DNA of 64,000 bases. Source: Macrostomum lignano. Lineage: Eukaryota. Position numbers and translations under genes: made by a program. The notes under the pieces were generated by a model. The model ran no database searches. It was given only the letters and a program-made list of their open reading frames with translations, and was not told the DNA's origin. Shown here piece by piece: positions 3,716 to 61,384 of the stretch (position 1 is the stretch's first letter; every line of letters begins with the position of its first letter). The stretch covers positions 193,738 through 257,737 of the forward strand of contig NIVC01000065.1 of the NCBI GenBank assembly GCA_002269645.1, written 5' to 3'.

Positions 3716-3761
3716 AGGTTATTAGCCCTTATATAATTCTATTAAAGAGCTTTAGTCATAA

Positions 3762-4365
3762 ACCCTTAGAATTAGCCTAATGAGATTCGGTTATCAAGCC
3801 TCAGAATTCCCTAATGAGATTCAGTTATCAAGCCTCAGAATTCCCTAATGAGATTTGGTTATCAAGCCTTAGAATTCCCTAATGAGATTCGGTCATCAAG
3901 CCTCAGAATTCCCTTGAGATTCGGTCATCAAGCCTCAGAATTCCCTTAATGAGATTCAGTTATCAAGCCTTAGAATTCCCTAATGAGATTTGGTTATCAA
4001 GCCTCAGAATTCCCTAATGAGATTCGGTCATTAAACACCAGAATTCCCCTAATGAGATTCCATTATCAAGCCTTAGAATTCCTCTAATGAGATTCCATTA
4101 TCAAGCCTCAGAATTCCCCTAATGAGATTTGGTCATCAAACATCAGAATTCCCTTAATGAGATTCGGTCATCAAGCCTCAGAATTCCCCTAATGAGATTT
4201 GGTCATCAAACCTCAGAATTCCCCTAATGAGATTTGGTCATCAAACCTCAGAATTCCCCTAATGAGATTTGGTCATCAAACCTCAGAATTCCCCTAATGA
4301 GATTTGGTCATCAAACCTCAGAATTCCCCAAATGAGCTTCATCATTAAGCCTCAGAATTTCCTTG
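3762..4365. repeat. Minisatellite, 34-35 bp unit (ccctaatgagattcggttatcaagcctcagaatt), about 17 copies
   Basis: Direct tandem units visible immediately after the LINE 3' end. Confidence 0.95.
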
Positions 4366-8065: not shown

Positions 8066-8095
8066 ATTCTAGAATTTTCTACGCCCCTTTATAAA
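8066..8095 (+). promoter_or_regulatory. Heat-shock element plus TATA box of Hsp70 copy 1
   Basis: aTTCt-aGAAt-tTTCt at 8066-8080 (three perfect alternating nGAAn units). TATAAA at 8090-8095, about 125 bp before the ATG. Confidence 0.85.
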
Positions 8096-8217
8096 GGCGG
8101 CAATTCAAACACTCTTTCCTTACACGCGGCGTCAGAAAGTTCTATAAGCTGGCTATACTTGTAAATTTAGTTTGTATTAGTATATTTATAAATATAACTT
8201 AAGCTAATAACTTTAAT

Positions 8218-11138
8218 ATGTCTAAAACTCCTGCAATTGGTATTGATCTGGGTACAACCTACTCGTGTGTTGGTGTCTTCCAGCACGGTAAGGTTGAAAT
8301 TATTGCCAACGATCAGGGCAACCGAACCACTCCCAGCTATGTTGCATTTACCGATACCGAAAGGCTCATCGGTGATTCGGCTAAAAATCAGGTGGCGCTA
8401 AATCCTTCCAATACTGTGTTTGGTAAGTCATATTCTTTCTGTTATCTTTTTTACTTGATAATTTAGTATGCATTAATTAGATTAGGTACCTACGATAAGT
8501 CGATGACTTGTCGATTGACCAAGAATATCTGCTTTGACCTGTCGTTTAAGTTGTGGCTTAAATTAAGTCGAGTGAAATATTTTTAATAGTATTTTTATTA
8601 TAAATCCACAGTCCCAAAAGTTCCCAAAAGTTTTGTACATGTCTAATGTCCTATATTGCTTATAAATCCTGAGGCATAGCTATTCTTTACAATTGCCGTC
8701 ATTAGGCCTAGCCTAGCTTTAGTTTTGCAAATTTCAATACTTATATTTTACTATTAATTGATTCACTTACAGATGCAAAGCGACTCATTGGACGCAAGTT
8801 TGATGATTCTGTAGTCCAACAAGACATGAAGCATTGGCCCTTCACTGTTGTCAATGATGGCAGTCGGCCAAAAATTCAAGTTGAGTTCAAAGGTGAGACT
8901 AAAAGCTTCTTTGCTGAAGAGATCTCTTCTATGGTCTTGACAAAGATGAAGGAGACTGCAGAGGCATACCTGGGAAAGACCGTCACTGATGCTGTTGTCA
9001 CTGTGCCTGCCTACTTCAATGATAGTCAGCGTCAAGCCACCAAGGATGCTGGTGCCATTGCTGGCCTGAATGTGCTGCGCATCATCAACGAGCCCACAGC
9101 TGCTGCCATTGCATATGGTCTAGACAAGAAGAGTGGCCACGAGAGGAATGTGCTCATCTTTGACCTCGGTGGTGGCACCTTCGATGTGTCCATCCTGACA
9201 ATCGAGGAGGGCATCTTCGAGGTGAAGTCGACTGCTGGAGACACCCATCTGGGCGGTGAGGACTTTGACAACAGGATGGTGAACCATTTCATCCAGGAGT
9301 TCAAGCGCAAGTACAAGAAGGACATGAGTGACAACAAGCGCGCTGTGAGGCGTCTGCGCACTGCCTGCGAGAGGGCCAAGCGAACTCTGAGCAGCGCCGC
9401 CCAGGCCAACATCGAGATTGACAGCCTATACGAGGGTATTGACTTCTACACGAGCATCACCAGGGCTCGCTTCGAGGAGCTCAACGCCGACCTGTTCCGT
9501 GGCACCCTCGAGCCAGTCGAGAAGTCGCTGCGTGACGCCAAGCTCGACAAAGCGTCCATCAACGAGATTGTGCTGGTGGGCGGCTCGACTCGAATCCCGA
9601 AGATCCAGAAGCTGCTGCAGGTGAGCAACTTGAAGTTTTTTAGATACTTCTTAGAAATTAAAGCTTGAGTAGTTAATTCAGCTGTTCTGCGAACTCAGAT
9701 GATGATATTCTGTAAGGTATTCGCGGTTTCGACAGACGGACCTGCAGTGGGTTCTCTGATGCCCAAGACCTTCCTTAGTCTGATGCTGAGATTCGCACCT
9801 GCAGTAGGATTACTTATTTGCTTATTGTTAGTGTAGGCTAAAGCACTGGCCAGCCAGAGCTCTCACAGATGATGATATTCTGTAAGGTATTCGCGGTTTC
9901 GACAGACGGACCTGCAGTGGGTTCTCTGATGCCCAAGACCTTCCTTAGTCTGATGCTGAGATTCGCACCTTCAGTAGGATTACTTATTTGCTTATTATTA
10001 GTGTAGGCTAAAGCACTGGCCAGCCAGAGCTCTCTCAGATGATGATATTCTGTAAGGTATTCGCGGTTTCGACAGACGGACCTGCAGTGGGTTCTCTGAT
10101 GCCCAAGACCTTCCTTAGTCTGATGCTGAGGCTGGCCCAGCGGGGAGCTCAGAACAAAGCAAAACAGTCCATCTGTAATCCCCATCGTCATCCCCACCCG
10201 CCATCTCGCAGGACTTCTTCAGCGGCAAGGAGCTCAACAAGTCGATCAACCCGGACGAGGCCGTCGCCTACGGCGCCGCCGTCCAGGCCGCCATTCTTCA
10301 CGGCGACAAGTCCGAGGCGGTGCAGGACCTCCTGCTGCTGGACGTGACGCCACTGTCGCTCGGCATCGAGACCGCTGGCGGCGTGATGACGGCCCTCATC
10401 AAGCGGAACACCACCATCCCCACCAAGCAGACGCAGACGTTCACCACCTACTCGGACAACCAGCCTGGCGTTCTAATCCAGGTGTACGAAGGCGAGCGTG
10501 CAATGACCAAGGACAACAACCTGCTGGGCAAGTTCGAGCTGTCCGGCATCCCGCCGGCTCCGCGCGGAGTCCCCCAGATCGAGGTGACCTTCGACATCGA
10601 CTCCAACGGCATTCTCAACGTGTCCGCCGTGGAGAAGAGCACTAACAAGGAGAACAAGATCACCATCACCAACGACAAGGGCCGTCTCAGCAAGGAGGAC
10701 ATCGAGCGGATGGTCAACGAGGCCGAGCGCTACAAGGCCGAGGACGACAAGCAGAAGGAGCGCGTCTCGGCCAAGAACTCGCTCGAGAGCTACGCCTTCT
10801 CCATGCGCCAGACTGTCGAGGACGAGAAGCTCAAGGACAAGATCTCCGAGGACGACAAGAAGACCATCCTGGACAAGTGCAACGACGTCATCAAGTGGCT
10901 CGACGCCAACCAGACCGCCGAGAAGGACGAATACGACCATCAGCAGAAGGAGCTCGAGAAGGTGTGCAACCCCATCATCACCAAGCTGTACCAGGCCGCT
11001 GGCGGAGCCGGTGGAATGCCCGGTAGCATGCCTGGCGGCTTCCCCGGTGGCGCTCCTGGTGCTGGCGCTGCTGGCGGCCAGAGCGGCGGCGGCGGCAGCG
11101 GTGGCGGCTCCGGCCCCACCATCGAGGAGGTCGACTAA
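8218..11138 (+). CDS. HSPA8: Cytosolic Hsp70/Hsc70 copy 1; join(8218..8422,8773..9620,10212..11138), 659 aa
   Basis: [24 protein letters not shown] and [11 protein letters not shown] signatures; GGMP-rich tail and GPTIEEVD terminus. All GT-AG junctions are in frame (205+848+927=1980 nt). Confidence 0.97.
9693..9790 (+). ncRNA. SNORD14: Box C/D snoRNA, U14 (SNORD14)-like, unit 1 in Hsp70 copy 1 intron 2
   Basis: C box ATGATGA 9699-9705; domain A TATTCGCGGTTTC 9718-9730; domain B CCTTCCTTAG directly before T+CTGA; D box 9780-9783. Confidence 0.82.
9863..9960 (+). ncRNA. SNORD14: U14-like snoRNA, unit 2 (170 bp downstream of unit 1)
   Basis: C box 9869-9875, D box 9950-9953, same domains A and B. 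Terminal stem CTCA-CA / TG-c-TGAG. Confidence 0.82.
10033..10130 (+). ncRNA. SNORD14: U14-like snoRNA, unit 3
   Basis: C box 10039-10045, D box 10120-10123. The D box lies 88 nt upstream of the 3' splice site at 10211, a typical position for intronic C/D snoRNAs. Confidence 0.82.
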
Positions 11139-12820
11139 AGTTTCTAAACGAAAGTGCTGCTTTGGTGGCTTTTGTGACAGTCCGTTTTTAATAACTAAAC
11201 CTTATAAGTAAGAGTAAAGTGGTTGCGTGTACCCGAGCGTCAGTACCATGCTGGCTGTTAGATCGAATTTCATCGATGCGATCGACCTTTTGCAGGTGTC
11301 TGGTTTTTTTAAATATGCCAATTTACAGCAGTTTTTTTACTCTGCCTCTTCCATCTGGCCTGTAAGCTAAGTACTGAAATACAAAATTATCCAGTTCGAA
11401 CTTGAAAGTCAACTTATTACATACCAATAATATTTTATTTAAGTTTTTGGTTTTTGTTCTTAAAAATGTTAATCTTTTATAAAAACTACCACACCCTTTA
11501 TTTCTAAAGTTTCTCAGCCTGTAAACAATTGCTTGCGAACGACGACTTCACTAAAGACATCGGTATTTCCTGGAAATATTTGTACTCGTAGAACTAGAGA
11601 TTTTGCGTCGCGGGCTCTAAATGTACATGCAGCCCGTAATTGATATTTTCCTAGGTTGCAGCTCGTACTGTATACGCGTATAATAAATATGCGATACTAA
11701 CTTACGCATTAATGCATTAATTCATACAACTACAGTCTACAGGTCCATCAAGACAGCTTTTTTTTCGTAGTTTATTCACTTTTAGTGATACGAGCAAGCT
11801 ACGTGTAAAGTTGCAGTTAATGAAAAGTCAAGCCCATATCCCAGAGTTTCTCAGAGCCATGGTTGATCTCCATAATAAAAATGCTATATGGAGCTTTCTA
11901 AACAAATCTGTGTATGTACCAAATGCAGACACCGGTAATTTTAAATAGTTCAAGTGGTCTCCTGTGCCGAGGAATACTGAACAACCAATTTTAAGAGTCA
12001 AAAGTACAATGTAATCGCTACTTCGGAAAGCTAAATGCAACACTATAGAAGCGTATACATGTACATGTCCATGTACTTTGCATACATTATAATTGTCTCT
12101 GTCCATGTCTGCGTGGTCTGTTAAGTAAACTCTCGGCAGATACATGTACATATAAAGTATATATAATGTACACTGTAGATGTACTTGTAAATGACATATG
12201 CATGCACCATTAATTAAGTCGGTGCAATGGTTGCAAAATGTACATGTAAGAAAGGACAGACAGGATTAAATGGATTTCCATGTAGCTTTACAAAATTAGG
12301 AAGCTTAACTGAAATCGATTGCTATAGCTACACTAAATATTACCAAGGACAACTTAAGTAGGACGCTACACTCGAAATCTATGGTAAATGTTTTGAAGGC
12401 AACTTTTCGCCGAAAAATACACGTGTAAACAGAGATAGGAGGTTTTCATTTTTTCAGCACAAAAAATATTATTGCTTTTGATAGGAGGCAGATCCAGTGT
12501 TCATCTTTTTGATATGCTGTGCCTTTCTTATTGCTCTATCAATATTCATAAAACTTTTCGTTCAGAAATAGTTTTTAAGGCAGGTTTCACCGGAAAACAC
12601 TACTGAGATAGGAAATTTCACGATTTTCAAAACTAAAACAGTGATTGGGTCTCTTAACATTGTCTGAGAAAGTTCTAATCGCACTATTTTTGTGCCTCAC
12701 ACTGCTGCTCTATAACGACGCATTAATCGATTTTTCATGTTAAATTGGTCTTGTCTTTTTTTAAACGTTTTTTCAAGTGACAGACCAATTTATGGGAATA
12801 AATTGCCCATTTTCCCATTT

Positions 12821-13263: not shown

Positions 13264-14111
13264 CATGCGGTAGTCACGTGACTGCTCTCAGCCAATAGCG
13301 ACTTACATGTGTGTGTTGCCAATAGAAACGGCCGAGTGATTCCCAAGGTTGCGCTTGTATGAGTCGGTAATACAGTAATAAATACTGAACCACATACTGA
13401 ACCAGTCGACGTTCTTTAACCAAGTAAAAATAATCCAAAACCGGACATTTTTGAAACTGAATAATTGAAAAACCGAATATAAGGCCTAGAAAAGTATAGG
13501 CCTAGCGCCGCGAGAACGCCTGGAAATAAATGAACCAAACTGTATATTTTTTCGGTTTAAAATGAAGACGAAATGCTTACTTATGCGGTATGCTAAGTAT
13601 TTGTTTGTAGAAAACTGGAGCAGGTCAAGGCGATGCAACCCCGGACAAAAAAACAATTGTTTGAGTCAAAAGGGCTGAAAGAAAAACAAGGCTGACAAAA
13701 AACCTCACTACTGAAGCCAAAAATGACACAGCGGTTTTAATAATCGACAGAAGTGAGACTATATGACATAGTGGGAGGAAATCTTACGTTTGATGACGAA
13801 AATAACAGATTATATTATTATTATTGGTACTATTAGTTATTAATATTAGAAAACTTGTTTATTATTGAATTATTAATCCTCCTCAGAACAAAAATTCTGA
13901 CATCAACAAGACTGGGATGTGATGGCGAACAAGGAGATGGAGTAGCAGCAATAAAAGTACACCGTCATATATGATCATTAATTAGACAAGTCGCATGTAG
14001 CGAATGTTTCAGCTCGGGGAAGTATTATAATCCAGGTACAAGCCAGGGTCAAAGCTGACAAACAGAACTCTTCACTGATAATTGATGTTCCAGTCAGATT
14101 TCACACTAACT

Positions 14112-17100
14112 TTAGTCGACCTCCTCGATGGTGGGGCCGGAGCCGCCACCGCTGCCGCCGCCGCCGCTCTGGCCGCCAGCAGCGCCAGCACCAGGAGCGC
14201 CACCGGGGAAGCCGCCAGGCATGCTACCGGGCATTCCACCGGCTCCGCCAGCGGCCTGGTACAGCTTGGTGATGATGGGGTTGCACACCTTCTCGAGCTC
14301 CTTCTGCTGATGGTCGTATTCGTCCTTCTCGGCGGTCTGGTTGGCGTCGAGCCACTTGATGACGTCGTTGCACTTGTCCAGGATGGTCTTCTTGTCGTCC
14401 TCGGAGATCTTGTCCTTGAGCTTCTCGTCCTCGACAGTCTGGCGCATGGAGAAGGCGTAGCTCTCGAGCGAGTTCTTGGCCGAGACGCGCTCCTTCTGCT
14501 TGTCGTCCTCGGCCTTGTAGCGCTCGGCCTCGTTGACCATCCGCTCGATGTCCTCCTTGCTGAGACGGCCCTTGTCGTTGGTGATGGTGATCTTGTTCTC
14601 CTTGTTGGTGCTCTTCTCCACGGCGGACACGTTGAGAATGCCGTTGGAGTCGATGTCGAAGGTCACCTCGATCTGGGGGACTCCGCGCGGAGCCGGCGGG
14701 ATGCCGGACAGCTCGAACTTGCCCAGCAGGTTGTTGTCCTTGGTCATGGCGCGCTCGCCTTCGTACACCTGGATTAGAACGCCAGGCTGGTTGTCCGAGT
14801 AGGTGGTGAACGTCTGCGTCTGCTTGGTGGGGATGGTGGTGTTCCGCTTGATGAGGGCCGTCATCACGCCGCCAGCGGTCTCGATGCCGAGCGACAGTGG
14901 CGTCACGTCCAGCAGCAGGAGGTCCTGCACCGCCTCGGACTTGTCGCCGTGCAGAATGGCGGCCTGGACGGCGGCGCCGTAGGCGACGGCCTCGTCCGGG
15001 TTGATCGACTTGTTGAGCTCCTTGCCGCTGAAGAAGTCCTGTGAGATGGCGGGTGGGGATGACGATGGGGATTACAGATGGACTGCTTTGCTTTGTTCTG
15101 AGCTCCCAGCTGGGCCAGCCTCAGCATCAGACTAAGGAAGGTCTTGGGCATCAGAGAACCCACTGCAGGTCCGTCTGTCGAAACCGCGAATACCTTACAG
15201 AATATCATCATCTGAGAGAGCTCTGGCTGGCCAGTGCTTTAGCCTACACTAATAATAAGCAAATAAGTAATCCTACTGCAGGTGCGAATCTCAGCATCAG
15301 ACTAAGGAAGGTCTTGGGCATCAGAGAACCCACTGCAGGTCCTTCTGTCGAAACCGCGAATACCTTACAGAATATCATCATCTGTGAGAGCTCTGGCTGG
15401 CCAGTGCTTTAGCCTACACTAACAATAAGCAAATAAGTAATCCTACTGAAGGTGCGAATCTCAGCATCAGACTAAGGAAGGTCTTGGGCATCAGAGAACC
15501 CACTGCAGGTCCGTCTGTCGAAACCGCGAATACCTTACAGAATATCATCACCTGAGTTCGCAGAACAGCTGAATTAACTACTCAAGCTTTAATTTCTAAG
15601 AAGTATCTAAAAAACTTCAAGTTGCTCACCTGCAGCAGCTTCTGGATCTTCGGGATTCGAGTCGAGCCGCCCACCAGCACAATCTCGCTGATGGACGCCT
15701 TGTCGAGCTTGGCGTCACGCAGCGACTTCTCGACTGGCTCGAGGGTGCCGCGGAACAGGTCGGCGTTGAGCTCCTCGAAGCGAGCCCTGGTGATGCTCGT
15801 GTAGAAGTCAATACCCTCGTATAGGCTGTCAATCTCGATGTTGGCCTGGGCGGCGCTGCTCAGAGTTCGCTTGGCCCTCTCGCAGGCAGTGCGCAGACGC
15901 CTCACAGCGCGCTTGTTGTCACTCATGTCCTTCTTGTACTTGCGCTTGAACTCCTGGATGAAATGGTTCACCATCCTGTTGTCAAAGTCCTCACCGCCCA
16001 GATGGGTGTCTCCAGCAGTCGACTTCACCTCGAAGATGCCCTCCTCGATTGTCAGGATGGACACATCGAAGGTGCCACCACCGAGGTCAAAGATGAGCAC
16101 ATTCCTCTCGTGGCCACTCTTCTTGTCTAGACCATATGCAATGGCAGCAGCTGTGGGCTCGTTGATGATGCGCAGCACATTCAGGCCAGCAATGGCACCA
16201 GCATCCTTGGTGGCTTGACGCTGACTATCATTGAAGTAGGCAGGCACAGTGACAACAGCATCAGTGACGGTCTTTCCCAGGTATGCCTCTGCAGTCTCCT
16301 TCATCTTTGTCAAGACCATAGAAGAGATCTCTTCAGCAAAGAAGCTTTTAGTCTCACCTTTGTACTCAACTTGAATTTTAGGCCTGCTAGCATCATTGAT
16401 GACAGTGAAGGGCCAATGCTTCATGTCTTGTTGGACAACAGAATCATCAAACTTGCGTCCAATGAGTCGCTTGGCATCTGTGAATTAGGAAAAAGAAATA
16501 TGAAATATGCATTAAAAATGTGAAATGACAAAAAAGAATTAAGAATTAATAAAGAATTATTAATGTTTTTATACTACTTAACCATATAATTTTGATCACT
16601 ACAAATAACAAATTAAGGAAAAATTAAAATAGCTTTATTATAATTTTTGCAGCTAGACATTCTTATTGATTTTTAATAAAAAAATAAATAATAATTTAAA
16701 ATAGACTATATAATTTATTAAGCTTATTATATGGGCATTAAAGTTTGACTTTTCTATGAATAATGATATTTTGTAACATTATATCTAGGCATACAATAGC
16801 CTGATAAGGTATGCTTTATGAATTTTATTCAATACATTACTACAATAGGTTAGACCTAGTAAATTAAATAGGCCTACTTAATAAAATTAGGTTTATAAAG
16901 ATAGTTATATTACAATTAACTTATATAGATGTAGTTCTAGAAATAGCCTGGTTAAACTTTAATTATCTCTACTGAAAAAAGTTAAGATTAATCAGTAGGC
17001 CTAATCACAGACAATATTAAACTGCTTACCAAAGACTGTGTTTGATGGGTTTAATGCGACTTGATTTTTTGCAGAATCGCCAATAAGACGTTCTGTGTCA

Positions 17101-17234
17101 GTAAATGCAACATAGCTCGGCGTTGTGCGATTTCCTTGGTCGTTGGCAATGATTTCCACTTTGCCATGCTGAAAGACACCGACGCAGGAGTAGGTAGTGC
17201 CGAGATCAATGCCAATAGCGGGAGCCTTTGCCAT
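14112..17234 (-). CDS. HSPA8: Cytosolic Hsp70/Hsc70 copy 2; complement(join(14112..15038,15630..16477,17030..17234)), 659 aa
   Basis: Same exon lengths (205/848/927) and intron phases as copy 1; same signatures and EEVD end. Confidence 0.97.
15120..15217 (-). ncRNA. SNORD14: U14-like snoRNA, unit 3 of Hsp70 copy 2 intron 2
   Basis: C box 15211-15205, D box 15130-15127; domains A and B intact. Confidence 0.82.
15290..15387 (-). ncRNA. SNORD14: U14-like snoRNA, unit 2 of Hsp70 copy 2 intron 2
   Basis: C box 15381-15375, D box 15300-15297. One substitution (cagacgg to cagaagg) falls outside the functional boxes. Confidence 0.82.
15460..15557 (-). ncRNA. SNORD14: U14-like snoRNA, unit 1 of Hsp70 copy 2 intron 2
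   Basis: C box GTGATGA 15551-15545 (still RTGATGA), D box 15470-15467. Confidence 0.82.
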
Positions 17235-17384: not shown

Positions 17385-17448
17385 TATATATAAATGCAGT
17401 GAAGGTGGGCCGGCGAAAAATCTAGAAAAGAAAATTCTAGAAACTTCT
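17385..17448 (-). promoter_or_regulatory. Heat-shock element plus TATA box of Hsp70 copy 2
   Basis: aGAAa-aTTCt-aGAAa-cTTCt at 17429-17448 (four perfect units). TATATA box at about 17385-17392. Confidence 0.85.
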
Positions 17449-19196: not shown

Positions 19197-19614
19197 CTGG
19201 GGCGTCGCCATCGATTTTATGGTGGGGGGACGAAAGGACAAAGAATTCTACATGCATGCATGTACATGCATGTACAACGTGACATTGACTATTTCCTACA
19301 TGTATTTTCAGAATCGGTACGGTGTTGTCAGCGCTCAAATTTTAGCACCACAGGCACTCGATCATTTTTGCGCCGCATCCAGGCACTCATTTTTGCGCAG
19401 CAGCAGGCACTTAATTATGCATTTTAATGTAGTTCCGCAGGCGCTTATACAGTACATGTATATAATATACTGTATATATGTATATTTTGTCGCCCTGAAG
19501 CAAAATTCTTGATTTCCATAACGGGTCGGTAGCATTGGCACGACCCCCACAGATTTTCTGAAGTGACGTACATATTGTCCGCCCCTGCCGCCCTAGCTAG
19601 CTAACTGTCTTCCC
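19197..19614 (+). mobile_element. hAT-like MITE, degenerate relative of the 49303..50138 element (second copy at 20654..21080)
   Basis: Starts ctggggcgtcgccatcgattttatgg like the 49303 TIR and shares ttttcagaatcggt, gcactcatttt units and tcgccctg.agcaaaatt.ttgatttccataacgggtc. A right-TIR remnant tggcgac lies at 21074-21080. Confidence 0.7.
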
Positions 19615-20384: not shown

Positions 20385-21613
20385 ACGCACAGTAAATCGT
20401 GCATCTAACGCGCGCCAGCGTGATACAATGAAAAGATTGCTTCAAAGAAGAGATGCATTTTTTCGTTTTGGAATAATTATCATTTTCGTCACCATTTCAT
20501 ACTGCACGTACTATAAATCAATATTATATTACATTTACTCATGTACACTGTATATGTTGTACATGCACACAAATATGAACATGTAGGAACATGTACATTC
20601 ACAAATACAGTGAACAAGGTATGCACCTGCTGTACATGTGCATGTGGTACACTCTGGGGCGTCGCCATCGATTTTATGGTGGGGGGACGAAAGGACAAAG
20701 AATTCTACATGCATGCATGTACATGCATGTACAACGTGACATTGACTATTTCCTACATGTATTTTCAGAATCGGTACGGTGTTGTCAGCGCTCAAATTTT
20801 AGCACCACAGGCACTCGATCATTTTTGCGCCGCATCCAGGCACTCATTTTTGCGCAGCAGCAGGCACTTAATTATGCATTTTAATGTAGTTCCGCAGGCG
20901 CTTATACAGTACATGTATATAATATACTGTATATATGTATATTTTGTCGCCCTGAAGCAAAATTCTTGATTTCCATAACGGGTCGGTAGCATTGGCACGA
21001 CCCCCACAGATTTTCTGAAGTGACGTACATATTGTCCGCCCCTGCCGCCCTAGCTAGCTAACTGTCTTCCCGGTGGCGACATGTACATGTTAAACTTAAT
21101 ATGGTTGTTAAGCTTGAATGGCGCCGCGGAGAAAAGAGAGAAGATAATTGGAAGAAGCGGGGAGATCGAGCTATCAGGGGAAAGAAAGAAGAGATCAATG
21201 AGATAGGGCCGGGAGGAGAATGCATGTACTGTACATGTACATTTACATGTAGTATACTTACATGTATATGCATATAGATAGGGCAGTTAGTATAGGGAAG
21301 AGAATTACCGAGTAAGTGTGGAGAGGACAGACCCGGAGCAGTTAATAAGATGGAAAAAAATTCTTTAGAAATTAAAACGGCTTTAGAAAAACGAAGAATT
21401 CAGTCAATTTGTTTCCATTCACAAATTAATTGCAGTCATTTATGCTGGTGTGCACTCAAACATAAGTACACATGTACTACATCGCCATAGACAAACCTTG
21501 AATTTTCTCGGCTTATTTACGCAGTTTTAGCTTGGCGGCCTACGCTAAAATCTGCCTATCATATTGCAACGCTCGTTAATTTTTTATCGTCAACTTTCAA
21601 AATCGTCAAAACA

Positions 21614-23140: not shown

Positions 23141-24000
23141 CAATACTCAATTCGTTCTCTTTCTTATGTTAAGCATTATCATTCCTACTGCATGCGTATT
23201 AGCAATAAGACGACATCTGTTCGAGTTAAATGTCGAACATAATTTAGAAAAAAAGAATCAGCACAGCTTTTTTGAAGAACCCTAATTTTTAGCACAACGG
23301 ACTTAGCTCAATTGAAACTGGCACATTGCGGACGTGAATACATTTCTCGCAATATAATTGAAACTCAAATCCTTGAAGTCGAAAATGAAATGACAGCCTG
23401 TTTAACTCGTTGGAATGTGTATATGGCTTCGCTTGCAGAAAGTTTTGGTTTAGTACCTAGTTAGATGACTTGCTATTCATGCCTGCACACACAACGCGAG
23501 TCCTTTAACCTCAAGCTGTACTCGCTTTTTGGCCCAACATTCTATTATTAGACAGTGTTTCATTTTATACGTCTGTGACACGTGGGTTGTACGTGCAGCG
23601 GCAGCGTGGGTGCAAAAAAAGAGAACTTTGAGCTTTAAGTGCGACAGCTACATAGAATCTTCTAGAAAGTTCGAGGAATTTTTGACCTATTTTTACGTAA
23701 ATAAATTGTCGAAAAAAACCTATTGCTGCGTATTGACCTACTGATAGTAGAAAGCATGGATTATTTAAATACTATAGCATTAAACAATCGCAGAGATTGG
23801 AAGGCTGAGAAAACTGAACTTTTATGAATTATCAACACATGAAGCTCAAGAATCATATTAGGCTTGTAATTTCTAGTTAGTTTTTGACGCTTTTCTATAT
23901 TATATTGCTGCGAAGTTTGTATCGGACAAATGGAAAGGTGTTATGTACATGTAGGATAGGTAATAGTGCAGGGAGGTTCGAGGCAGTGCTGGGAGCTGGG

Positions 24001-24500
24001 GGTAGTGCAGGGAGCATATGGGTAGTGCAGGGAGCATATGGGTAGTGCAGGGAGCATATGGGTAGTGCAGGGAGCATATGGGTAGTGCAGGGAGCATATG
24101 GGTAGTGCAGGGAGCATATGGGTAGTGCAGGGAGCATATGGGTAGTGCAGGGAGCATATGGGTAGTGCAGGGAGCATATGGGTAGTTCAGGGAGCATGGG
24201 GGTAGTGCAGGGAGCATATGGGTAGTGCAGGGAGCATGGGGGTAGTGCAGGGAGCATATGGGTAGTGCAGGGAGCATATGGGTAGTGCAGGGAGCATATG
24301 GGTAGTGCAGGGAGCATATGGGTAGTTCAGGGAGCATGGGGGTAGTTCAGGGAGCATATGGGTAGTGCAGGGAGCATATGGGTAGTGCAGGGAGCATATG
24401 GGTAGTGCAGGGAGCATATGGGTAGTGCAGGGAGCATATGGGTAGTTCAGGGAGCATATGGGTAGTGCAGGGAGCATATGGGTAGTGCAGGAAGCGTGGG
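24001..24500. repeat. Minisatellite, 20 bp (ggtagtgcagggagcatatg), about 25 copies
   Basis: Exact 20-bp register across consecutive lines. Confidence 0.97.
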
Positions 24501-25483: not shown

Positions 25484-27853
25484 ATGGCCGCGGCGTCAAC
25501 AACGGCTGCCGTGTCCGCTAGCAGTCCGCACCATGACCAGCAGCTGGGCATGTCTGACAGCCTGTATCCTGCGGGCGGCTCCGCCAGTCACTACAGAGCC
25601 TCGCCCTGGGACATGGCCGTCAGAAGATGCGGCAGTGGCGTAAGTTTGGCATCGGTTAGTTCCTTTGCTTGTCTCATTATGCACGGGCTTAGCTAGGTAT
25701 TTATTGAAGGGCGGCGGCACCAGTGGCTTTAGCAGCAGTGGCTTTAGCACCAGGGGCTTTAGCACCAGTGGCTTTAGCACCAGTGGCTTTAGCACCAGGG
25801 GCTTTAGCACCAATGGCTTTAGCACCAGTGGCTTTAGCACCAGGGGCTTTAGCACCAATGGCTTTAGCACCAGTGGCTTTAGCACCAGGGGCTTTAGCAC
25901 CAGGGGCTTTAGCAGCAGGGCCTTTAGCACCAGGGGCTTTAGCACCAGTGGCTTTAGCACCAGGGCCTTTAGCACCAGTGGCTTTAGCACCAGGGCCTTT
26001 AGCACCAGTGGCTTTAGCACCAGTGGCTTTAGCACCAGGGCCTTTAGCACCAGTGCCTTTAGCACCAGTGGCTTTAGCACCAGGGCCTTTAGCACCAGTG
26101 GCTTTAGCACCAGGGCCTTTAGCACCAATGGCTTTAGCACCAATGGCTTTAGCACCAGGGGCTTTAGCACCAGGGGCTTTAGCACCAGGGGCTTTAGCAG
26201 CAGGGCCTTTAGCACCAGGGGCTTTAGCACCAGTGGCTTTAGCACCAGGGCCTTTAGCACCAGTGGCTTTAGCACCAGGGCCTTTAGCACCAGTGGCTTT
26301 AGCACCAATGGCTTTAGCACCAGGGGCTTTAGCACCAGTGGCTTTAGCACCAGGGGCTTTAGCACCAGGGGCTTTAGCACCAGGGGCTTTAGCACCAGGG
26401 GCTTTAGCACCAGGGCCTTTAGCACCAGGGCCTTTAGCACCAGGGGCTTTAGCACCAGGGGCTTTAGCGCCAGGGCCTTTAGCACCAGGGCCTTTAGCAC
26501 CAGGGGCTTTAGCACCAGGGGCTTCACCAGCGGCGCTTTGGAATAAGTAACGAAACAAGAGTAATCACAAGAAAGTTTTACTCCCCACCCTATACTCGTA
26601 CATCTATTCACAGTTTCCAGCACTTGCTCATTATAACGAAAACGTATCAATATAGGAAGTGACAGTCTTTCTAGCTCACTATTTTCATTATTTCAACAGA
26701 TAATATTCACTGTGTAAGGCTTGCAAGAGAGTTTGAAAGAGTCCATCGCTCACTGAAAAGTCGAATGCATAAAGAAACTCAACAATTTTAGACCACAGCT
26801 GCTCCGTTCTCGCTGGACGAGCACCAGCTGCTGGCTCGGGCTGCCACCACTCTGGTGGACGGCGGCGGCAGCAGTGGGGTCGGCGCCGAGATGAAGCCGT
26901 CCGGCGGTCCGCACGGCATGCCGATGCCAGCCTTCCTGCGTCAGCACCAGGAGAATTTGTACACGCAGATGCAGCCGCCGCCGCATCCGCTCTACATGCA
27001 GCAGGACCAGCTGCATCAGCAGCAGCATCATCATCAGCAGCATCAGCATCAGCATCAGCAGCAGCAGCTTCAACACCAACAGGAGCTCAGCCACCATCAT
27101 CATCACATGCAGGCGATGGTTGGCTACGGAGGCTACCACAACCTGGCTTATCCGACTAACCCTCACATGGTCGCCGCTGCAGGTCACCAGCAGTTGCAGC
27201 AACAGCAGCTGCATCACCAGGTGCATGAACAACAGCAGCAGCAGTTACAGCAGCAACAGCAGCACCTGCAGCAGCAGCACCAGCACCAGCAGCAGTGCAT
27301 GAGCCCTACATCGCACTATGCAAGTGTCGCTGCCGCCACCGCCGTAGAACTGATGGACTACGATCCCAGGGAGCTCGAAGCCTTCGCTGAACGCTTCAAA
27401 CAGCGTCGAATTAAACTTGGCGTAACTCAAGCCGACGTTGGCAAAGCTTTAGGCAATCTGAAGCTTCCGGGCGTTGGCTCTCTGTCGCAGTCAACCATCT
27501 GCAGATTTGAGTCGCTGACGCTCAGTCACAACAACATGATCGCGCTCAAGCCGGTGCTCCAGGCCTGGCTAGAAGAGGCCGAGCACGTTGCCATGGAGCG
27601 GCAGAAGAACCCGGACGTCTACGGCGACGGGCTGGACAAGAAGCGCAAGCGGACGTCCATAACGGACGCGGAGAAGCGTTCGCTAGAGGCCTACTTCCAC
27701 GTGCAGCCCCGACCGTCCTCGGAGAAGATCGCCCAGATTGCCGAGAAGCTCAACCTGAAGAAGAATGTCGTCCGAGTCTGGTTCTGCAACCAGCGCCAGA
27801 AGCAGAAGCGAATGAAATTCGCCACCCCGGGCATGCACCCGAGCCCGCACTGA
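25484..27853 (+). CDS. POU4: POU class IV (Brn-3/Unc-86) transcription factor; join(25484..25639,26792..27853), 405 aa
   Basis: POU-specific domain (PRELEAFAERFKQRRIKLGVTQADVG...STICRFESLTLSHNNMIALKP) and homeodomain (KKRKRTSI...VVRVWFCNQRQKQKRMK). POU-IV box FSLDEHQLLARA follows the acceptor ttttag|26792. Phase-0 donor GGC|GTAAGT at 25639. Confidence 0.95.
25712..26535. repeat. Minisatellite, 15 bp (gctttagcaccaggg), about 54 copies, in the POU4 intron
   Basis: Direct tandem units; source of the spurious long ORFs in all frames. Confidence 0.97.
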
Positions 27854-29147
27854 CCTTTATTTCACAGCAACCATGCAGGTACATGTACAATTGCAACCCT
27901 CATCCAGCCATTGAGAGATGTTGACACACATAGATTGACTAATTATCATAATTCTTACGGAGATCTTTTTGGTAAATTTTGACTCCTCAAAAACACCTAG
28001 GGCATACAAGAAACCCTTATGGAAAAAACAATGGAACACCTGAATTCCCCTGTGAACCCCCCTCCCACCGAGACCCCTGTAACAACCCCAGTTATAACCT
28101 TTCTCTGTTGGTACACAAGCAGGAGAGATAAAAATGTGTCCTTTGTTTTTTCTACTTGTACTACAACTACAGTTGGTAACTAATTTATAATTTATTTCAA
28201 TCTCCTTTACTGTACATATAGGCGTACACAAGAGCGCAAGTGGATCCAAAGGACTCAAGATATTGAATTTCTGTGATGTTTTCAAGCCCATCTATACTGA
28301 ATAAAGTACCATGGGCGACCAACCTTAGTGTCAGGTAGAAACTTTAAACTTATGTATGTAATGCATTGTCATGGACAGCTGAAGTAGAAGTACGCTCACT
28401 CGACTTTCTTTGAAATGAGCTGGAGGCAGATAAAAAACGTGTATTTGTCATATCGCTTGCTAGAGGAACAGATTCTCTAGAAGCAATACTTTCTAAGAAA
28501 GAACAGCCCCTCTAGAAGCAATTCTATAAGTATTTAGCATGCCCATAGAGAAAGCACAGCTCTGAATGGGGCTTTCGCCATAGAAAAATACGGTGGAGAA
28601 ATCTCATTTTCTCTACGACCTCCAGCTCATTTTTTAGAAAATATAGTGTATAGTTTTTACTTTTTGGTTGTCCATGAGCTCTGGTTGTTTATCATGTGTG
28701 TTAGTTTATGTATTTGAAAGTCTGCACGCTAGATATGCACAATTTATATACCGCGTGTTCACAAACAAAATCGATTTTCTATGTACAAGTAAGAATGGTT
28801 TTAGAGCATGGACATGTACTATTAAGACAGATTTATTGAGGACTTTATTGTCCCAGCTTGTTCTCTACTAATAAAAATATGCTTCGCTTCCTAGAACTTT
28901 GTCCATTCTTGGTGTTGAAAGTGTACGATTGTCGTTCTCATTTTAGTAAACACGGTAGCAACCGCTAGCTTGCGTCTGCAACAGCTGCTGCTTGTGTTTG
29001 TTATTCTGTTTGCGCTTCAATTTGCTTAAAGACGGTGTTTACAAGCATTCAAACTAAAATATACTGTTCATAAGGTATGAATATTTGTCGAATTGTTTAA
29101 TGAAAATTTGCAACTAAGCTGTGAACTCAAGAGTTGCTTCAAGACGG

Positions 29148-29800
29148 GTTCCAGTGTCGCTTCAGGAGTAGGGGGTTCCAGTGTCGCTTCAGGAGTAGGG
29201 GGTTCCAGTATCGCTTCAGGAGTAGGGGGTTCCAGTGTCGCTTCAGGAGTAGGGGGTTCCAGTGTCGCTTCAGAAGTAGGGGTTCCAGTGTCGCTTCAGG
29301 AGTAGGGGGTTCCAGTGTCGCTTCAGGAGTAGGGGGTTCCAGTGTCGCTTCAGGAGTAGGGGGTTCCAGTGTCGCTTCAGGAGTAGGGGATTCTCCAGTG
29401 TCGCTTCAGGAGTAGGGGGTTCCAGTGTCGCTTCAGGAGTAGGGGTTCCAGTGTCGCTTCAGGAGTAGGGGGTTCCAGTGTCGCTTCAGGAGTAGGGGTT
29501 CCAGTGTCGCTTCAGGAGTAGGGGGTTCCAGTGTCGCTTCAGGAGTAGGGGGTTCCAGTGTCGCTTCAGGAGTAGGGGGTTCCAGTGTCGCTTCAGGAGT
29601 AGGGGGTTCCAGTGTCGCTTCAGGAGTAGGGGGTTCCAGTGTCGCTTCAGGAGTAGGGGGTTCCAGTGTCGCTTCAGGAGTAGGGGGTTCCAGTGTCGCT
29701 TCAGGAGTAGGGGGTTCCAGTGTCGCTTCAGGAGTAGGGGGTTCCAGTGTCGCTTCAGGAGTAGGGGGTTCCAGTGTCGCTTCAGGAGTAGGGGGTTCCT
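29148..29800. repeat. Minisatellite, 27 bp (ccagtgtcgcttcaggagtagggggtt), about 24 copies
   Basis: Direct tandem units with occasional 1-bp G deletions. Confidence 0.97.
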
Positions 29801-30861
29801 GTCTCGCCATTAATTAAGCTCACCCATTTGTTGCATATCGAATCAATGGCAACTTATTGTGCAAAAACAATAAAACAAAAAAATAATGCAAGAGAAATCG
29901 CCGATCAGGAGACCCAGTGTGGAATTCAGAGTCTAAACAAAACTATGCTAGGTTTAGGAGAGCTGTACCTAAAGCTTACATAGGAGAGGCGCTTTTTAAA
30001 GAGGCTGCATGGACTCTCACTCCGACCCTCTCTTTCTCAGCTCCGTCAGTCTCTATGCGATTCTCTTAGGTAGTCCTCCAAAAAAATTCACATCCAACCA
30101 AACTTCCAAGTATCGGGAGTGCTCCAGCAGCAGCAGCAGCAGCAAGGGTTACACACTATATACTGAGCAGGGACCGCTATAGCGTGGACTGCGGCCGCAC
30201 ACGTGTGCGTGAGGAGGGCATTGTTTAATCTTGAGAAGTATGGGAGTTCCAAGGGGTTGACTGGGGGGGGGGTGTAGAGACGAGAGTCTTAGGAAGCAGC
30301 GCGGCTTTAAGATGGAGGACCAGTAGTGGTAGCCGCTTCTCATCTCTCAACTGGCCTCCCGCTACTCAAAGCCTGAAAAAAACTGCGCGGGGTTTTTCTC
30401 TTCCCCTCTTCCCTGGCAGCATAAATATTTCACAGGTGGGCCGCGTTCCCATCGGCACCGGCTGAAACTTTGGTGGCCTAACTTTTTCTCCGCGCCCTGG
30501 CAATACTGCGAGTGGATTACTAATATTATGGGGAGTTTGGCCTTCATTGCCCAGTACTGAGCCGAGATGGAGGAGACTGGAGTCAGCCTGCCCGCTCTGG
30601 AAGACACTACTACAGTATATAGCACGAAGGAATGAAAACAGAGCGGGAATTAATTAGAGAGAGACTATTCAAAACACGTCATTTCCCCAACCCCCCAGCT
30701 TTCAAACCTGGGATTGCTTTGAGAGTTTTTTGTCTCGGCCGCCGCTTGCGTGAAAGAACTTTTTTGTGAAATTCATTTTTTTTTAAGAATTGCTTATTGC
30801 AAACTGATGGCTGCTAGAAGATAGGCTGATCTGGAAGAAACACAGCCTCCTATAAGGATAG

Positions 30862-34844: not shown

Positions 34845-35625
34845 TATAGTGCCATCTTTGATAACAGCAGTGCCATTTTGAGCAAGATTGCAATGCCACT
34901 GTTGATAACAGCAGTGCCATTTTGAGCAAGATTGAAGTGGCACTTTGATGATAGCAGTGTCATTTTGAGCAAGATTGCAGTGGCACCTTTGATAACAGCA
35001 GTGCCATTTTGAGCAAGATTGCAATGCCACTGTTGATAACAGCAGTGCCATTTTGAGCAAGATTGAAGTGGCACTTTGATAACAGCAGTGCCATTTTGAG
35101 CAAGATTGCAGTGGCACTTTGATGATAGCAGTGCCATTTTGAGCAAGATTGAAGTGGCACTTTGATAACAGCAGTGCCATTTTGAGCAAGATTGCAGTGG
35201 CACTTTGATGATAGCAGTGCCATTTTGAGCAAGATTGCAGTGGCACTTTGATGATAGCAGTGCCATTTTGAGCAAGATTGAAGTGGCACTTTGATGATAA
35301 CAGTGCCATTTTGAGCAAGATTGAAGTGGCACTTTGATGATAGCAGTGCCATTTTGAGCAAGATTGAAGTGGCACTTTGATGATAGCAGTGCCATTTTGA
35401 GCAAGATTGAAGTGGCACTTTGATAACAGCAGTGCCATTTTGAGCAAGATTGAAGTGGCACTTTGATGATAGCAGTGTCATTTTGAGCAAGATTGCAGTG
35501 GCACCTTTGATAACAGCAGTGCCATTTTGAGCAAGATTGAAGTGGCACTTTGCTGATAGCAGTGCCATTTTGAGCAATATTGAAGTGGCACTTTGATGAT
35601 AACAGTGCCATTTTGAGCAAGATTA
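34845..35625. repeat. Minisatellite, ~43-46 bp (agcagtgccattttgagcaagattgaagtggcactttgatgat), about 17 copies
   Basis: Direct tandem units, each with an internal inverted pair agtgcca/tggcact. Confidence 0.95.
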
Positions 35626-57745: not shown

Positions 57746-58431
57746 GTCCTCCTCCAGGTCGTGAAGTCCTTAGTCTAGAAAGGTCCCCTATTCAGTTGAT
57801 GAACTCCTGTTTAGCAAAGTACATTTATAGTATTTGAATGGAACAGTTTAGCACCTGCAAGTATGCACCGTTGAAATGAAATGAAAATCTCCACGAAGCT
57901 ACTATAATAAGTTACAACATTTTACTTATCCAAGACTATATCGCGGTTGCTATGCTTATAACTATATTTGCTGCTACCGTATTACGACAACGATTAATAC
58001 TAAAATGAAATATTTCTGTTCTGATTTAACAGTAGAAAATGATTGGATTTGGCCTAAAATTCAATATTATTTTCGTCGAAAGCTAAATTTAATCCTGTTT
58101 TTCTGTTTATTCTTGCGATTTGTACTCGGAAAATCCGACAACTGCACGAGATGCAATTAAACCCCCTCTCTCTCTCTCCCTCTTTTCTCTCTCTCCTCTC
58201 TCACTATTTCTGTACGCTTTCATTGATTGTCTTGCCAACTAAGACAATAGTTGCTGTACATGGGGTCAGTGCGGTTGGCATGAAACAATATAAAAGCATC
58301 AAAATTTGGCGAGAGAATGAGTCACATTCTACCTAGTATCTTTTTTATTGCAGCCTTCTTTGATGCAATTCCTGGGTAAGTGTATATTCTTTTTTAAACT
58401 GCTTTCTGTTGTTTATTCTACATGCCTGTGA

Positions 58432-60475
58432 TTCTGTAGCCGGTAATGCTGTAGTCTGTGATGCTGTAGTCTGTGATGCTGTAGTCTGTGATGCTATAGT
58501 CTGTGATGCTGTAGTCTGTGATGGTGTAGTCTGTGATGCTGTAGTCTGTGATGCTGTAGTCTGTGATGCTGTAGTCTGTGATGCTGTAGTCTGTGATGCT
58601 GTAGTCTGTGATGGTGTAGTCTGTGATGCTGTAGTCTGTGATGGTGTAGTCTGTGATGCTGTAGTCTGTGATGCTGTAGCCGGTGATGCTGTAGTCTGTG
58701 ATGATGTAGTCTGTGATGGTGTAGTCTGTGATGGTGTAGTCTGTGATGGTGTAGTCTGTGATGCTGTAGTCTGTGATGGTGTAGTCTGTGATGCTGTAGT
58801 CTGTGATGCTGTAGTCTGTGATGCTGTAGTCTGTGATGCTGTAGTCTGTAATGGTCTACTCTGTGATGCTTTAGTCTGTGATGGTGTAGTCTGTGATGCT
58901 GTAGTCTGTGATGCTGTAGTCTGTGATGCTGTAGTCTGTGATGGTCTACTCTGTGATGCTTTAGTCTGTGATGCTGTAGTCTGTGATGCTGCAGTCTGTG
59001 ATGGTGTAGTCTGTGATGCTGTAGTCTGTGATGGTCTACTCTGTGATGCTTTAGTCTGTGATGCTGTAGTCTGTGATGCTGCAGTCTGTGATGGTGTAGT
59101 ATGTGATGCTGTAGTCTGTGATGGTGTAGTCTGTGATGCTGTAGTCTGTGATGGTGTAGTCTGTGATGCTGCACTCTGTGATGCTGCAGTCTGTAATGAT
59201 GTAGTCTGTGATGGTGTAGTCTGTGATGGTGTAGTCTGTGATGCTACACTCTGTGATGCTGCAGTCTGTAATGATGTAGTCTGTGATGGTGTAGTCTGTG
59301 ATGGTGTAGTCTGTGATGCTGCAGTCTGTGATGGTGTAGTCTGTGATGCTGTAGTCTGTGATGGTCTACTCTGTGATGCTTTAGTCTGTGATGCTGTAGT
59401 CTGTGATGCTGCAGTCTGTGATGGTGTAGTATGTGATGCTGTAGTCTGTGATGGTGTAGTCTGTGATGCTGTAGTCTGTGATGGTGTAGTCTGTGATGCT
59501 GCACTCTGTGATGCTGCAGTCTGTAATGATGTAGTCTGTGATGGTGTAGTCTGTGATGGTGTAGTCTGTGATGCTACACTCTGTGATGCTGCAGTCTGTA
59601 ATGATGTAGTCTGTGATGGTGTAGTCTGTGATGGTGTAGTCTGTGATGGTGTAGTCTGTGATGGTGTAGTCTGTGATGGTGTAGTCTGTGATGGTGTAGT
59701 CTGTGATGGTGTAGTCTGTGATGGTGTAGTCTGTGATGGTGTAGTCTGTGATGGTGTAGTCTGTGATGGTGTAGTCTGTGATGGTGTAGTCTGTAATGGT
59801 GTAGTCTGTAATGATGTAGTCTGTGATGCTGCAATCTGTGATGGTGTACTCTGTGATGCTTTAGTCTGTGATGGTGTAGTCTGTGATGCTACACTCTGTG
59901 ATGCTGCAGTCTGTAATGATGTAGTCTGTGATGGTGTAGTCTGTTATGGTGTAGTCTGTGATGGTGTAGTCTGTGATGTGTAGTCTGTGATGGTGTAGTC
60001 TGTGATGGTGTAGTCTGTGATGGTGTAGTCTGTGATGGTGTAGTCTGTGATGGTGTAGTCTGTGATGGTGTAGTCTGTGATGGTGTAGTCTGTGATGGTG
60101 TAGTCTGTGATGGTGTAGTCTGTGATGGTGTAGTCTGTGATGGTGTAGTCTGTGATGGTGTAGTCTGTGATGGTGTAGTCTGTAATGGTGTAGTCTGTAA
60201 TGATGTAGTCTGTGATGCTGCAATCTGTGATGGATGTACTCTGTGATGCTTTAGTCTGTGATGGTGTAGTCTGTGATGCTACACTCTGTGATGCTGCAGT
60301 CTGTAATGATGTAGTCTGTGATGGTGTAGTCTGTGATGGTGTAGTCTGTGATGGTGTAGTCTGTGATGGTGTAGTCTGTGATGGTGTAGTCTGTGATGGT
60401 GTAGTCTGTGATGCTGTAATTTGTGATGGTGTAATATATGTGATGCTGTAATTTTTGATGCTGTAATCTGTGATG
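58432..60475. repeat. Large 15-bp satellite (gtagtctgtgatgct/ggt), about 135 copies, with higher-order blocks
   Basis: Direct tandem units; variant monomers recur at 330-bp spacing. Confidence 0.97.
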
Positions 60476-61384
60476 TGTACATGTAATCTAACTGTAACGC
60501 TTTATTCTGCGATACGTCAATCTTTCATACTGAAGACTGTATTTTGTGTAAGCCATCGCTGAAATTTGTTACCAAAACACAATCCAAATCAACAAATTTC
60601 TTTTAACAGGCTAAACAACACCTTTTGGAGTCCCAGGTGGATCCTCGCTCTACGAGGACCCAGCGGTCGGCGATGCCGATGCCGAAGCTAATAAAATTTT
60701 GAGATTCCGGCAATGTTCTTCTGCCGACGAGACTACAGAACAGACAGTTCAGCCGAAAAGATTTGTCAGAAACTGACATTGCTTTGCCTTTGACTACACG
60801 CTACCATGATACAATTTGACTCTCCTACAGTGAGAAGGGACTACTACAACATCTGCAACTACGCTAAAAGAGATGTTCTCTACCACAACAAGATGTTCTA
60901 GTCCCTTGGCATGGAGTGAAGCTACCGACACGCTTTGCTCCAATCTGTACAAAACTTTGTGCCTGCGCATCGTCGACCGAAAAAAAAGAATTAATTAATT
61001 TGTTCCTCAAGTTTTTCAAAGTTAATCTGCAAAGAGAAGAGAAACTATACTAAACGACGTTCTACTGCAACTACCGTAGTAGGGGTACCATTAACATAGG
61101 CTGTATTGTTATGCTTACCTACTGACTAATGTTAACTACTACTACTGGTAGCTAATCTTTGCAGTTTGGTTGCTGTGGCAACGGTAGCGAAAACAAACTA
61201 CAGCCGCTGCATGATCTTGGAAATTTCAATGCAAATCTGTGTTTGATGTCCTGAGTTGCGTTGAGAAATTCCCAGATGCTGCAGAGCTGGGTATATTGTT
61301 TCGCTTATAGCCCTGTATAATTAACAGATGTACAGTAGACATGTACAGTAGGCTAGCTACTTGCACCAGCTCCCAGCCCTCTGG

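Follow-up and report, generated by a model that had tools for sequence, protein, structure and literature searches.

The 64,000-nt stretch analysed here, from the genome of the free-living flatworm Macrostomum lignano (assembly GCA_002269645.1, contig NIVC01000065.1, positions 193,738 to 257,737 of the forward strand; hereafter the window, with coordinates counted from its first nucleotide) contains two Hsc70-type genes, whose second introns each hold a tandem array with a 170-bp repeat unit. We consider it likely that this unit is one divergent box C/D small nucleolar RNA (snoRNA) gene of the U14 family plus a spacer, that three such genes lie head to tail and in sense orientation in intron 2 of each Hsc70 gene, and that they are processed along the route proposed below. 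Sequence comparison establishes the U14 homology, the anatomy of boxes, stem and domains, the host intron, and the presence of the same host link in molluscs and fish. In vertebrates, mammals included, U14 resides in introns of hsc70 genes and is required for 18S processing (PMC7277114; PMC2653536); in chicken HSPA8 it occupies introns 5, 6 and 8 (PMC2653536).

The array of gene A, on the plus strand, lies in an intron of 591 nt (9621..10211, GT...AG, phase 0 between codons 351/352), where Tandem Repeats Finder (TRF) reports 2.6 copies with a period of 170 bp and 98% matches at 9696-10130. The mirror array of gene B was found at 15120-15556 on the opposite strand, within intron 2 of that gene (15039..15629). 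One repeat unit comprises a 97-nt box C/D module and a 73-nt spacer, in the order snoRNA-spacer-snoRNA-spacer-snoRNA, and the edges of the gene A array coincide with the two strands of a terminal stem, from the 5' strand CTCAG (9694-9698) to the 3' strand CTGAG (10126-10130). An earlier note on this DNA had described the repeat as 170-bp units ending exactly at the third module, and both TRF and the stem strands agree with this. It had also stated an 85-nt span for boxes C and D, two conserved motifs, and 88 nt between the last box D and the 3' splice site, all of which were correct.

In the first copy, A1 (9694..9790, plus strand, stem CTCAG/CTGAG), box C (ATGATGA, 9699-9705) and box D (CTGA, 9780-9783) span these 85 nt, with domain A at 9718-9731 and the core of domain B at 9769-9776. 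After spacer 1 (9791..9863, plus strand, 73 nt), which has neither snoRNA features nor a significant fold, follows copy A2 (9864..9960, plus strand), whose 5' stem strand reads CACAG and thus introduces one mismatch into the terminal stem. Spacer 2 (9961..10033, plus strand, 73 nt) separates it from copy A3 (10034..10130, plus strand), the box D of which (10120-10123) is the one 88 nt from the 3' splice site; about 54 nt separate it from CTGTAAT (~10173-10179), a candidate branch site. On the minus strand, gene B carries copies B1 (15460..15556), where box C reads GTGATGA, B2 (15290..15386), where an A replaces a C in the region of the internal hairpin, and B3 (15120..15216), the 3'-most. In the units of the window, TATTCGCGGTTTC comes after box C and CCTTCCTTAG before box D, and a 31-nt motif that spans box C and reaches into domain A is present at exactly six sites, with zero expected and none in shuffled sequences. 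The spacer has ATTCGC and ACCTGCAGT in common with the snoRNA; the alignment between them is weak (score 27), and we do not claim the spacer as a decayed snoRNA copy.

When the units, the spacer and the entire intron were folded by minimum free energy, z-scores ranged from −0.5 to +0.7, and the units folded no better than shuffled sequences. Box C/D RNAs normally lack such a signal, and the result counts neither for nor against a C/D RNA.

The significance of the U14 assignment comes from a lophotrochozoan profile and not from the Rfam score. We built a profile hidden Markov model (HMM) from only ten mollusc U14s of hsc70 introns, seven of them above the Rfam gathering threshold, and searched the whole 64-kb window with nhmmer, with filters off. 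Since a MAFFT alignment shifted box C by 3 nt, the sequences were aligned in local-pair mode. The profile matched the six copies of the window with E-values of 1.7e-6 to 2.3e-5, over HMM positions 5-91 of 95, while the next best match in the window had an E-value of 2.5. In a second contig from M. lignano (NIVC01002591.1, locus L001) it recovered seven of seven copies, and it matched the U14s of catfish at about 1e-18.

Further, in a permissive Rfam scan of the intron, SNORD14 (RF00016) was the only family that matched the units end to end (model positions 1-111). Its alignment takes in box C, the AUUCGC-GUUUC segment, domain A, the internal hairpin, a C'-like UGAUG, the domain B core CCUUCCUU and box D. 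In each species the two strands of the terminal stem are complementary, while their sequence differs (CUCAG/CUGAG in the flatworm; UGAC/GUCA, UGGC/GCCA, AGAU/AUCU and UCGC/GCGA in the others), which is the expected compensatory pattern. We conclude that the units, judged by their sequence, are U14 homologues that have diverged far more than mollusc and fish U14s have from each other. The identification as box C/D snoRNAs of the U14 family, which the earlier note had proposed, is supported by this homology together with the anatomy.

U14 RNAs are about 85-105 nt long, with box C (RUGAUGA) close to the 5' end and box D (CUGA) close to the 3' end, joined by a short terminal stem. They are stable nucleolar RNAs to which fibrillarin, Nop56, Nop58 and 15.5K bind, and their depletion blocks 18S maturation. 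U14 has two elements complementary to 18S rRNA. One of them, domain A, comprises 13 nt downstream of box C, pairs with the 5' region of 18S and is essential for the processing of 18S. The other, domain B, is a 14-nt complement abutting box D that guides 2'-O-methylation of a conserved C (C462 in human); yeast can grow without it. To quantify pairing we counted contiguous pairs; RNAduplex comparisons of whole snoRNAs with 18S were dominated by long loops. The 18S segments, including UGAAACUGCGAAUG as the target of domain A, are ones regarded as conserved in general and were not taken from M. lignano rDNA, which the window does not contain. With this segment, domain A of the flatworm units (UAUUCGCGGUUUCG) forms 14 contiguous pairs (11 Watson-Crick and three G-U), compared to 12-13 in mollusc U14s, and its A-to-G variant GCGG is also found in Littorina U14s that pass Rfam gathering. 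By this measure domain A, the 18S-processing element, is intact in the M. lignano units.

For comparison, we collected Hsc70 genes with introns from other animals and scanned them for SNORD14. Catfish HSPA8, located beside an Ig-domain neighbour and serving as positive control, has three copies (68-71 bits), one per intron. In the unionid mussel Potamilus streckersoni we found five copies (70-73 bits; L010, 6433-9324), all in one 4.1-kb hsc70 intron, with the similarity between copies confined to ~143 nt around each snoRNA. The clam Mercenaria mercenaria has three (39-58 bits; L006, 5898-11199), all in the last, 5.5-kb hsc70 intron, and the final one is 85 nt from the 3' splice site, compared to 88 nt in the flatworm. 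The hsc70 gene of the periwinkle Littorina saxatilis has two (65-66 bits; L011, 2426-2520 and 4580-4674). The intron at codon 373/374 is U14-bearing in catfish, Littorina and Potamilus, and that at codon 189/190 in catfish and Littorina.

Both flatworm arrays run in the sense direction of their host, within an intron of a cytosolic Hsc70/HSPA8-type gene. The vertebrate host link thus reaches the flatworm, as the earlier note had suggested, with three units per intron and six in the window. In vertebrate SNORD14C/D/E of HSPA8, box C, domain A, the internal hairpin, a C'-like box, the domain B core and box D are colinear with the flatworm units, and the snoRNAs are likewise intronic, in sense orientation and present in several copies per gene of the same family. 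The vertebrate U14s, however, are located one per intron in different introns, whereas the flatworm has three in one intron, 170 bp apart. Mollusc U14s resemble the flatworm ones in their Hsc70-type host and, in two bivalves, in the presence of several copies per intron, but the mollusc copies are 590-4300 bp apart, with spacers that are diverged or filled with repeats, whereas the flatworm array is compact and its copies are nearly identical. An array peculiar to M. lignano is not what we find, as bivalve hsc70 introns hold three to five U14s and introns with several snoRNAs are known from rice, Drosophila and Chlamydomonas.

The sampled hsc70-type genes of Schistosoma, Haliotis, Helobdella, Schistocerca and Penaeus contained no U14, a result that pertains to those paralogues only; the coding region of the Penaeus gene has no introns. 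Hsc70-like genes of Xenopus tropicalis (L002) and Lerista (L009) show the vertebrate intron pattern with U14 in none of the introns, and are presumably paralogues of the U14-hosting HSPA8. In a literature search of incomplete coverage, no account of U14 within hsc70 genes of molluscs or flatworms came to light. Two matches to other small RNAs were seen in these loci. Intron 1 of Littorina hsc71 (L011, 929-1011) has a weak SNORD53/SNORD92-like box C/D match (32.8 bits, gathering 46, E-value 0.004), perhaps a snoRNA of another kind hosted by this gene, and the Hsp70 locus of Schistosoma mattheei (L003, 9754-9831, minus strand) contains a match to the mir-3492 precursor (63.5 bits, gathering 44) between Hsp70 coding segments.

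Several observations weigh against the interpretation of the units as working U14 genes. The first concerns domain B, which retains eight of 14 canonical pairs and is displaced by 3 nt from box D (CCUUCCUU-AGU-CUGA), whereas molluscs and catfish have the full CCUUCCUUGGAUGU immediately before CUGA, with 14 pairs, the length found in vertebrate U14. By the box-D+5 rule, the target of the flatworm domain B would no longer be the canonical C but an A lying 3 nt further downstream, and the helix is too short for a normal guide. The canonical methylation guide has probably been lost in the M. lignano units, so that of the two 18S-complementary domains assigned by the earlier note, domain A stands in full and domain B in truncated form. 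When we scanned metagenomes for U14s with a similarly shortened domain B (domain A, gap, CCTTCCTT, 1-4 nt, CTGA), only seven chance matches were obtained, which had no box C, no profile match and no Hsp70 nearby.

The second concerns Rfam. A scan of the entire window at gathering thresholds yielded no match, and in the permissive scan of the intron (621 nt, 4227 families) SNORD14 scored 20.2 and 19.7 bits, against a gathering threshold of 64, with E-values of 0.23-0.3 and two of the three gene A copies among the matches listed. The Rfam model, which the earlier note had named as a test for U14, therefore gives a marginal outcome: SNORD14 is the only full-length family, but at 20 bits it stays far below gathering. 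In practical terms, the case shows that U14s of fast-evolving flatworms escape detection at Rfam gathering thresholds. In addition, the flatworm host intron at 351/352 differs from the U14 introns of molluscs and vertebrates (189/190, 373/374, 441/442 and ~509, the first three being those of vertebrates). An intron at codon 351/352 was present in none of the other sampled genes, suggesting that the intron moved or that the array was acquired separately.

The remaining points concern the array itself. The spacer contains no significant hairpin that could serve as an RNase III mark (z-score −0.5). Among the 13 M. lignano copies of both contigs, the 85-nt core shows two singleton differences and no others. 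The spacers vary hardly more than this, so that no signal of selection can be read from the variation within the species. The 5-bp terminal stem CUCAG/CUGAG is kept in 11 of these copies; one has a single mismatch and one, in the second contig, a broken stem.

Such features could also be expected if the units were decaying or neofunctionalised U14 paralogues and a working U14 with an intact domain B resided elsewhere, in another Hsc70 paralogue or in a ribosomal protein gene (compare RPS13 in vertebrates). The truncated and shifted domain B would fit this explanation, as would an Rfam score of one third of gathering, where mollusc and fish U14s reach 39-73 bits, the unstable copy number, the damaged terminal stem of one copy, and spacers that are conserved like the snoRNAs, which makes purifying selection not demonstrable. 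We nevertheless regard it as unlikely. Twelve of the 13 copies have intact boxes C and D, an intact terminal stem and the complete 14-bp domain A, and it is domain A that 18S processing depends on, while yeast grows without domain B. Moreover, the 3'-most copy retains the favoured distance to the splice site, and the generally fast evolution of flatworm sequences would account for the low score.

For the interpretation as functional U14 genes, we propose the following route of processing. The units would be co-transcribed with the Hsc70 pre-mRNA and freed by splicing, after which the intron would be debranched and trimmed by exonucleases, with the core C/D proteins assembling on the box C/D kink-turn of each unit. 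Copy A3 is placed at a distance from the 3' splice site and the branch point that favours splicing-coupled assembly, as 88 nt to the splice site and ~54 nt to the candidate branch site are within the range reported as optimal for this coupling in mammals. The importance of the distance between snoRNA and splice site has been noted previously (PMC2780460). Since the exonucleases would halt at the outermost small nucleolar ribonucleoproteins, three separate RNAs would require an endonucleolytic cut in every spacer, followed by trimming, a route proposed for introns with several snoRNAs in plants and flies. The earlier note had inferred the same need for endonucleolytic separation, and its reasoning is logically sound. 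Alternatively, efficient maturation might be confined to the last copy. Once mature, the RNA would work chiefly through domain A, which can pair over 14 bp with the conserved segment in the 5' region of 18S, as a chaperone required for 18S processing, while the truncated domain B guide would probably no longer direct the conserved Cm.

Neither splicing-dependent release nor endonucleolytic separation would be needed if the units were transcribed independently, from a promoter in the 73-nt spacer. Some intronic or clustered snoRNAs of nematodes and plants do have their own promoters, and a spacer is present in every repeat of the arrays. This explanation appears very improbable to us, however, because the first copy of each array has a wholly different upstream sequence and would have no such promoter, all copies are sense to their host, and the last copy is found at the canonical splicing-coupled distance, as in Mercenaria. 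That the arrays are ordinary intronic minisatellites with coincidental snoRNA-like motifs, as might be suspected in a window full of tandem repeats (76 TRF rows) and from unit fold energies no better than those of shuffled sequences, is hardly credible and effectively refuted by the SNORD14 match, the sole full-length one in Rfam, and by the profile matches in both contigs, which are full-length and colinear and in the window occur only at six sites (E-values of about 1e-5 to 1e-6), to which are added a host gene shared with mollusc and vertebrate U14, array edges exactly on the terminal-stem strands, and the fact that box C/D RNAs normally lack a thermodynamic signal.

The second M. lignano contig has the same inverted gene pair, with four and three U14 copies in place of the three and three of the window. 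The copies in its four-copy gene are 100% identical. Its three-copy gene has a 297-bp element within the first spacer, and not within a snoRNA (about 13720-14020, minus strand). This element is flanked by a duplicated ACTGGCCA target site and has 14-bp terminal inverted repeats (CATACATGCGCAAC...GTTGCGCATGTATG), resembling a miniature inverted-repeat transposable element. In the window, an ungapped alignment of genes A and B at 98.99% identity extends from 4 nt upstream of exon 2 to 4 nt past the stop codon (8769-11142 and 16481-14108). Exon 1, by contrast, reaches only 78.5%, and neither intron 1 nor the promoters nor the 3' flanks of the two genes can be aligned. This contrast looks like a sharply bounded gene-conversion tract between the inverted paralogues, which includes the snoRNA intron. 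Unequal crossing-over would shift the copy number (three versus four) and gene conversion would keep the arrays of the paralogues identical.

Repeats and rearrangements were also seen outside of the arrays. Two identical TRF matches (19362-19484 and 20819-20941), 1457 bp apart, indicate that ~1.46 kb are directly duplicated upstream of gene B. In the second contig, the 19-bp minisatellite lies ~2.5 kb closer to this gene than it does in the window; judged by this distance, the duplication may be reduced in length or missing there. The window as a whole is packed with minisatellites (76 TRF rows, periods of 14-43 bp, lengths of 0.4-2 kb), for example at 3755-4359, 23985-24495, 25717-26524, 29146-29807, 34848-35624 and 58426-60479, and many of these arrays give rise to long spurious repeat open reading frames.

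The host genes are convergent, tail to tail, with gene A on the plus and gene B on the minus strand. Gene A has its exons at 8218..8422 (AT-rich), 8773..9620 and 10212..11138, the last ending in IEEVD and a stop codon; those of gene B are at 17030..17234, 15630..16477 and 14112..15038. The GC content is 0.46 in exon 1 and 0.31 in intron 1, compared to 0.63 in exon 3. Joined at GT...AG sites, the three exons encode an uninterrupted Hsp70 of 659 residues with the C-terminus IEEVD, and the spliced product of the window is 99% identical to an annotated M. lignano Hsp70 over 100% of its length. Besides the IEEVD end, the host protein has GGMP-type repeats, and its identity to Hsc70/HSPA8 proteins from many animals is 87-90%.

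Both genes have a perfect heat-shock element (HSE) beside a TATA box, in agreement with the HSE-containing promoters described in the earlier note. In the promoter of gene A, the element TTCTAGAATTTTC (8067..8079, plus strand) lies 11 nt upstream of TATAAAG (8090-8096), and in that of gene B an extended element (17430..17447, minus strand) lies upstream of the TATATATA box. A third perfect palindromic HSE (GAATCTTCTAGAAAGTTC, 23655-23672) is far from the Hsp70 genes and has no obvious heat-shock open reading frame nearby. That these elements could couple rRNA processing to heat shock is speculation and appears improbable: both host proteins are of the cognate type despite the HSEs, and heat shock generally impairs splicing and rRNA processing, which would oppose such a coupling.

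Intronic snoRNA gene clusters, with at least two snoRNAs per intron, are described for rice, Drosophila and Chlamydomonas in PMC2780460 and in references in PMC5932544 and PMC5122169. The flatworm arrays, with three copies per intron 2 in the window and four in one of the genes of the second contig, are clusters of this kind. As in those, the shared intron implies cleavage between the units and exonucleolytic trimming, but the clusters of rice, Drosophila and Chlamydomonas mostly combine different snoRNAs (chiefly H/ACA in Drosophila), whereas the flatworm has a homogeneous array of one essential processing snoRNA. Multi-snoRNA precursors that need endonucleolytic separation, as proposed here for the flatworm, are also formed by the tandem U14 genes of maize and by yeast snR190-U14, the latter being separated by the RNase III enzyme Rnt1. 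These are independent, non-intronic units, whereas the flatworm array is intronic and no Rnt1-type stem-loop is evident in its spacer. Polycistronic snoRNA precursors are found in plants in general (PMC5122169). The flatworm array joins two known themes, U14 in Hsc70 genes and several snoRNAs per intron, and what is particular to it is the compact, homogeneous 170-bp tandem form.

As such, the array overturns no current understanding and is a real but fairly ordinary feature. It adds a flatworm and three molluscs to a host relationship that has so far been documented for vertebrates, and the occurrence in both groups suggests that one of the first snoRNA-host pairs to be described is very old. 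Tentatively, and with more reserve than for the identification itself, we can picture a wider history, in which the U14-Hsc70 link dates from the bilaterian ancestor (as the 373/374 intron of fish, chicken, gastropod and bivalve might indicate), multi-copy arrays arose repeatedly in lophotrochozoans and flatworms, and with them the use of an endonucleolytic pathway, and Macrostomum U14 shed its methylation guide and would be maintained by its role as an 18S chaperone alone. If this were true, Macrostomum U14 would be a natural separation-of-function allele.

With three identical units and 73-nt spacers, in an organism that supports RNA interference and transgenesis, the array offers a compact and tractable case for studying how snoRNAs that share an intron are separated, a question that does not arise in vertebrates because they have one snoRNA per intron. 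The truncated domain B further provides a natural test of U14 function, in which the methylation function would have been lost and the processing function kept.

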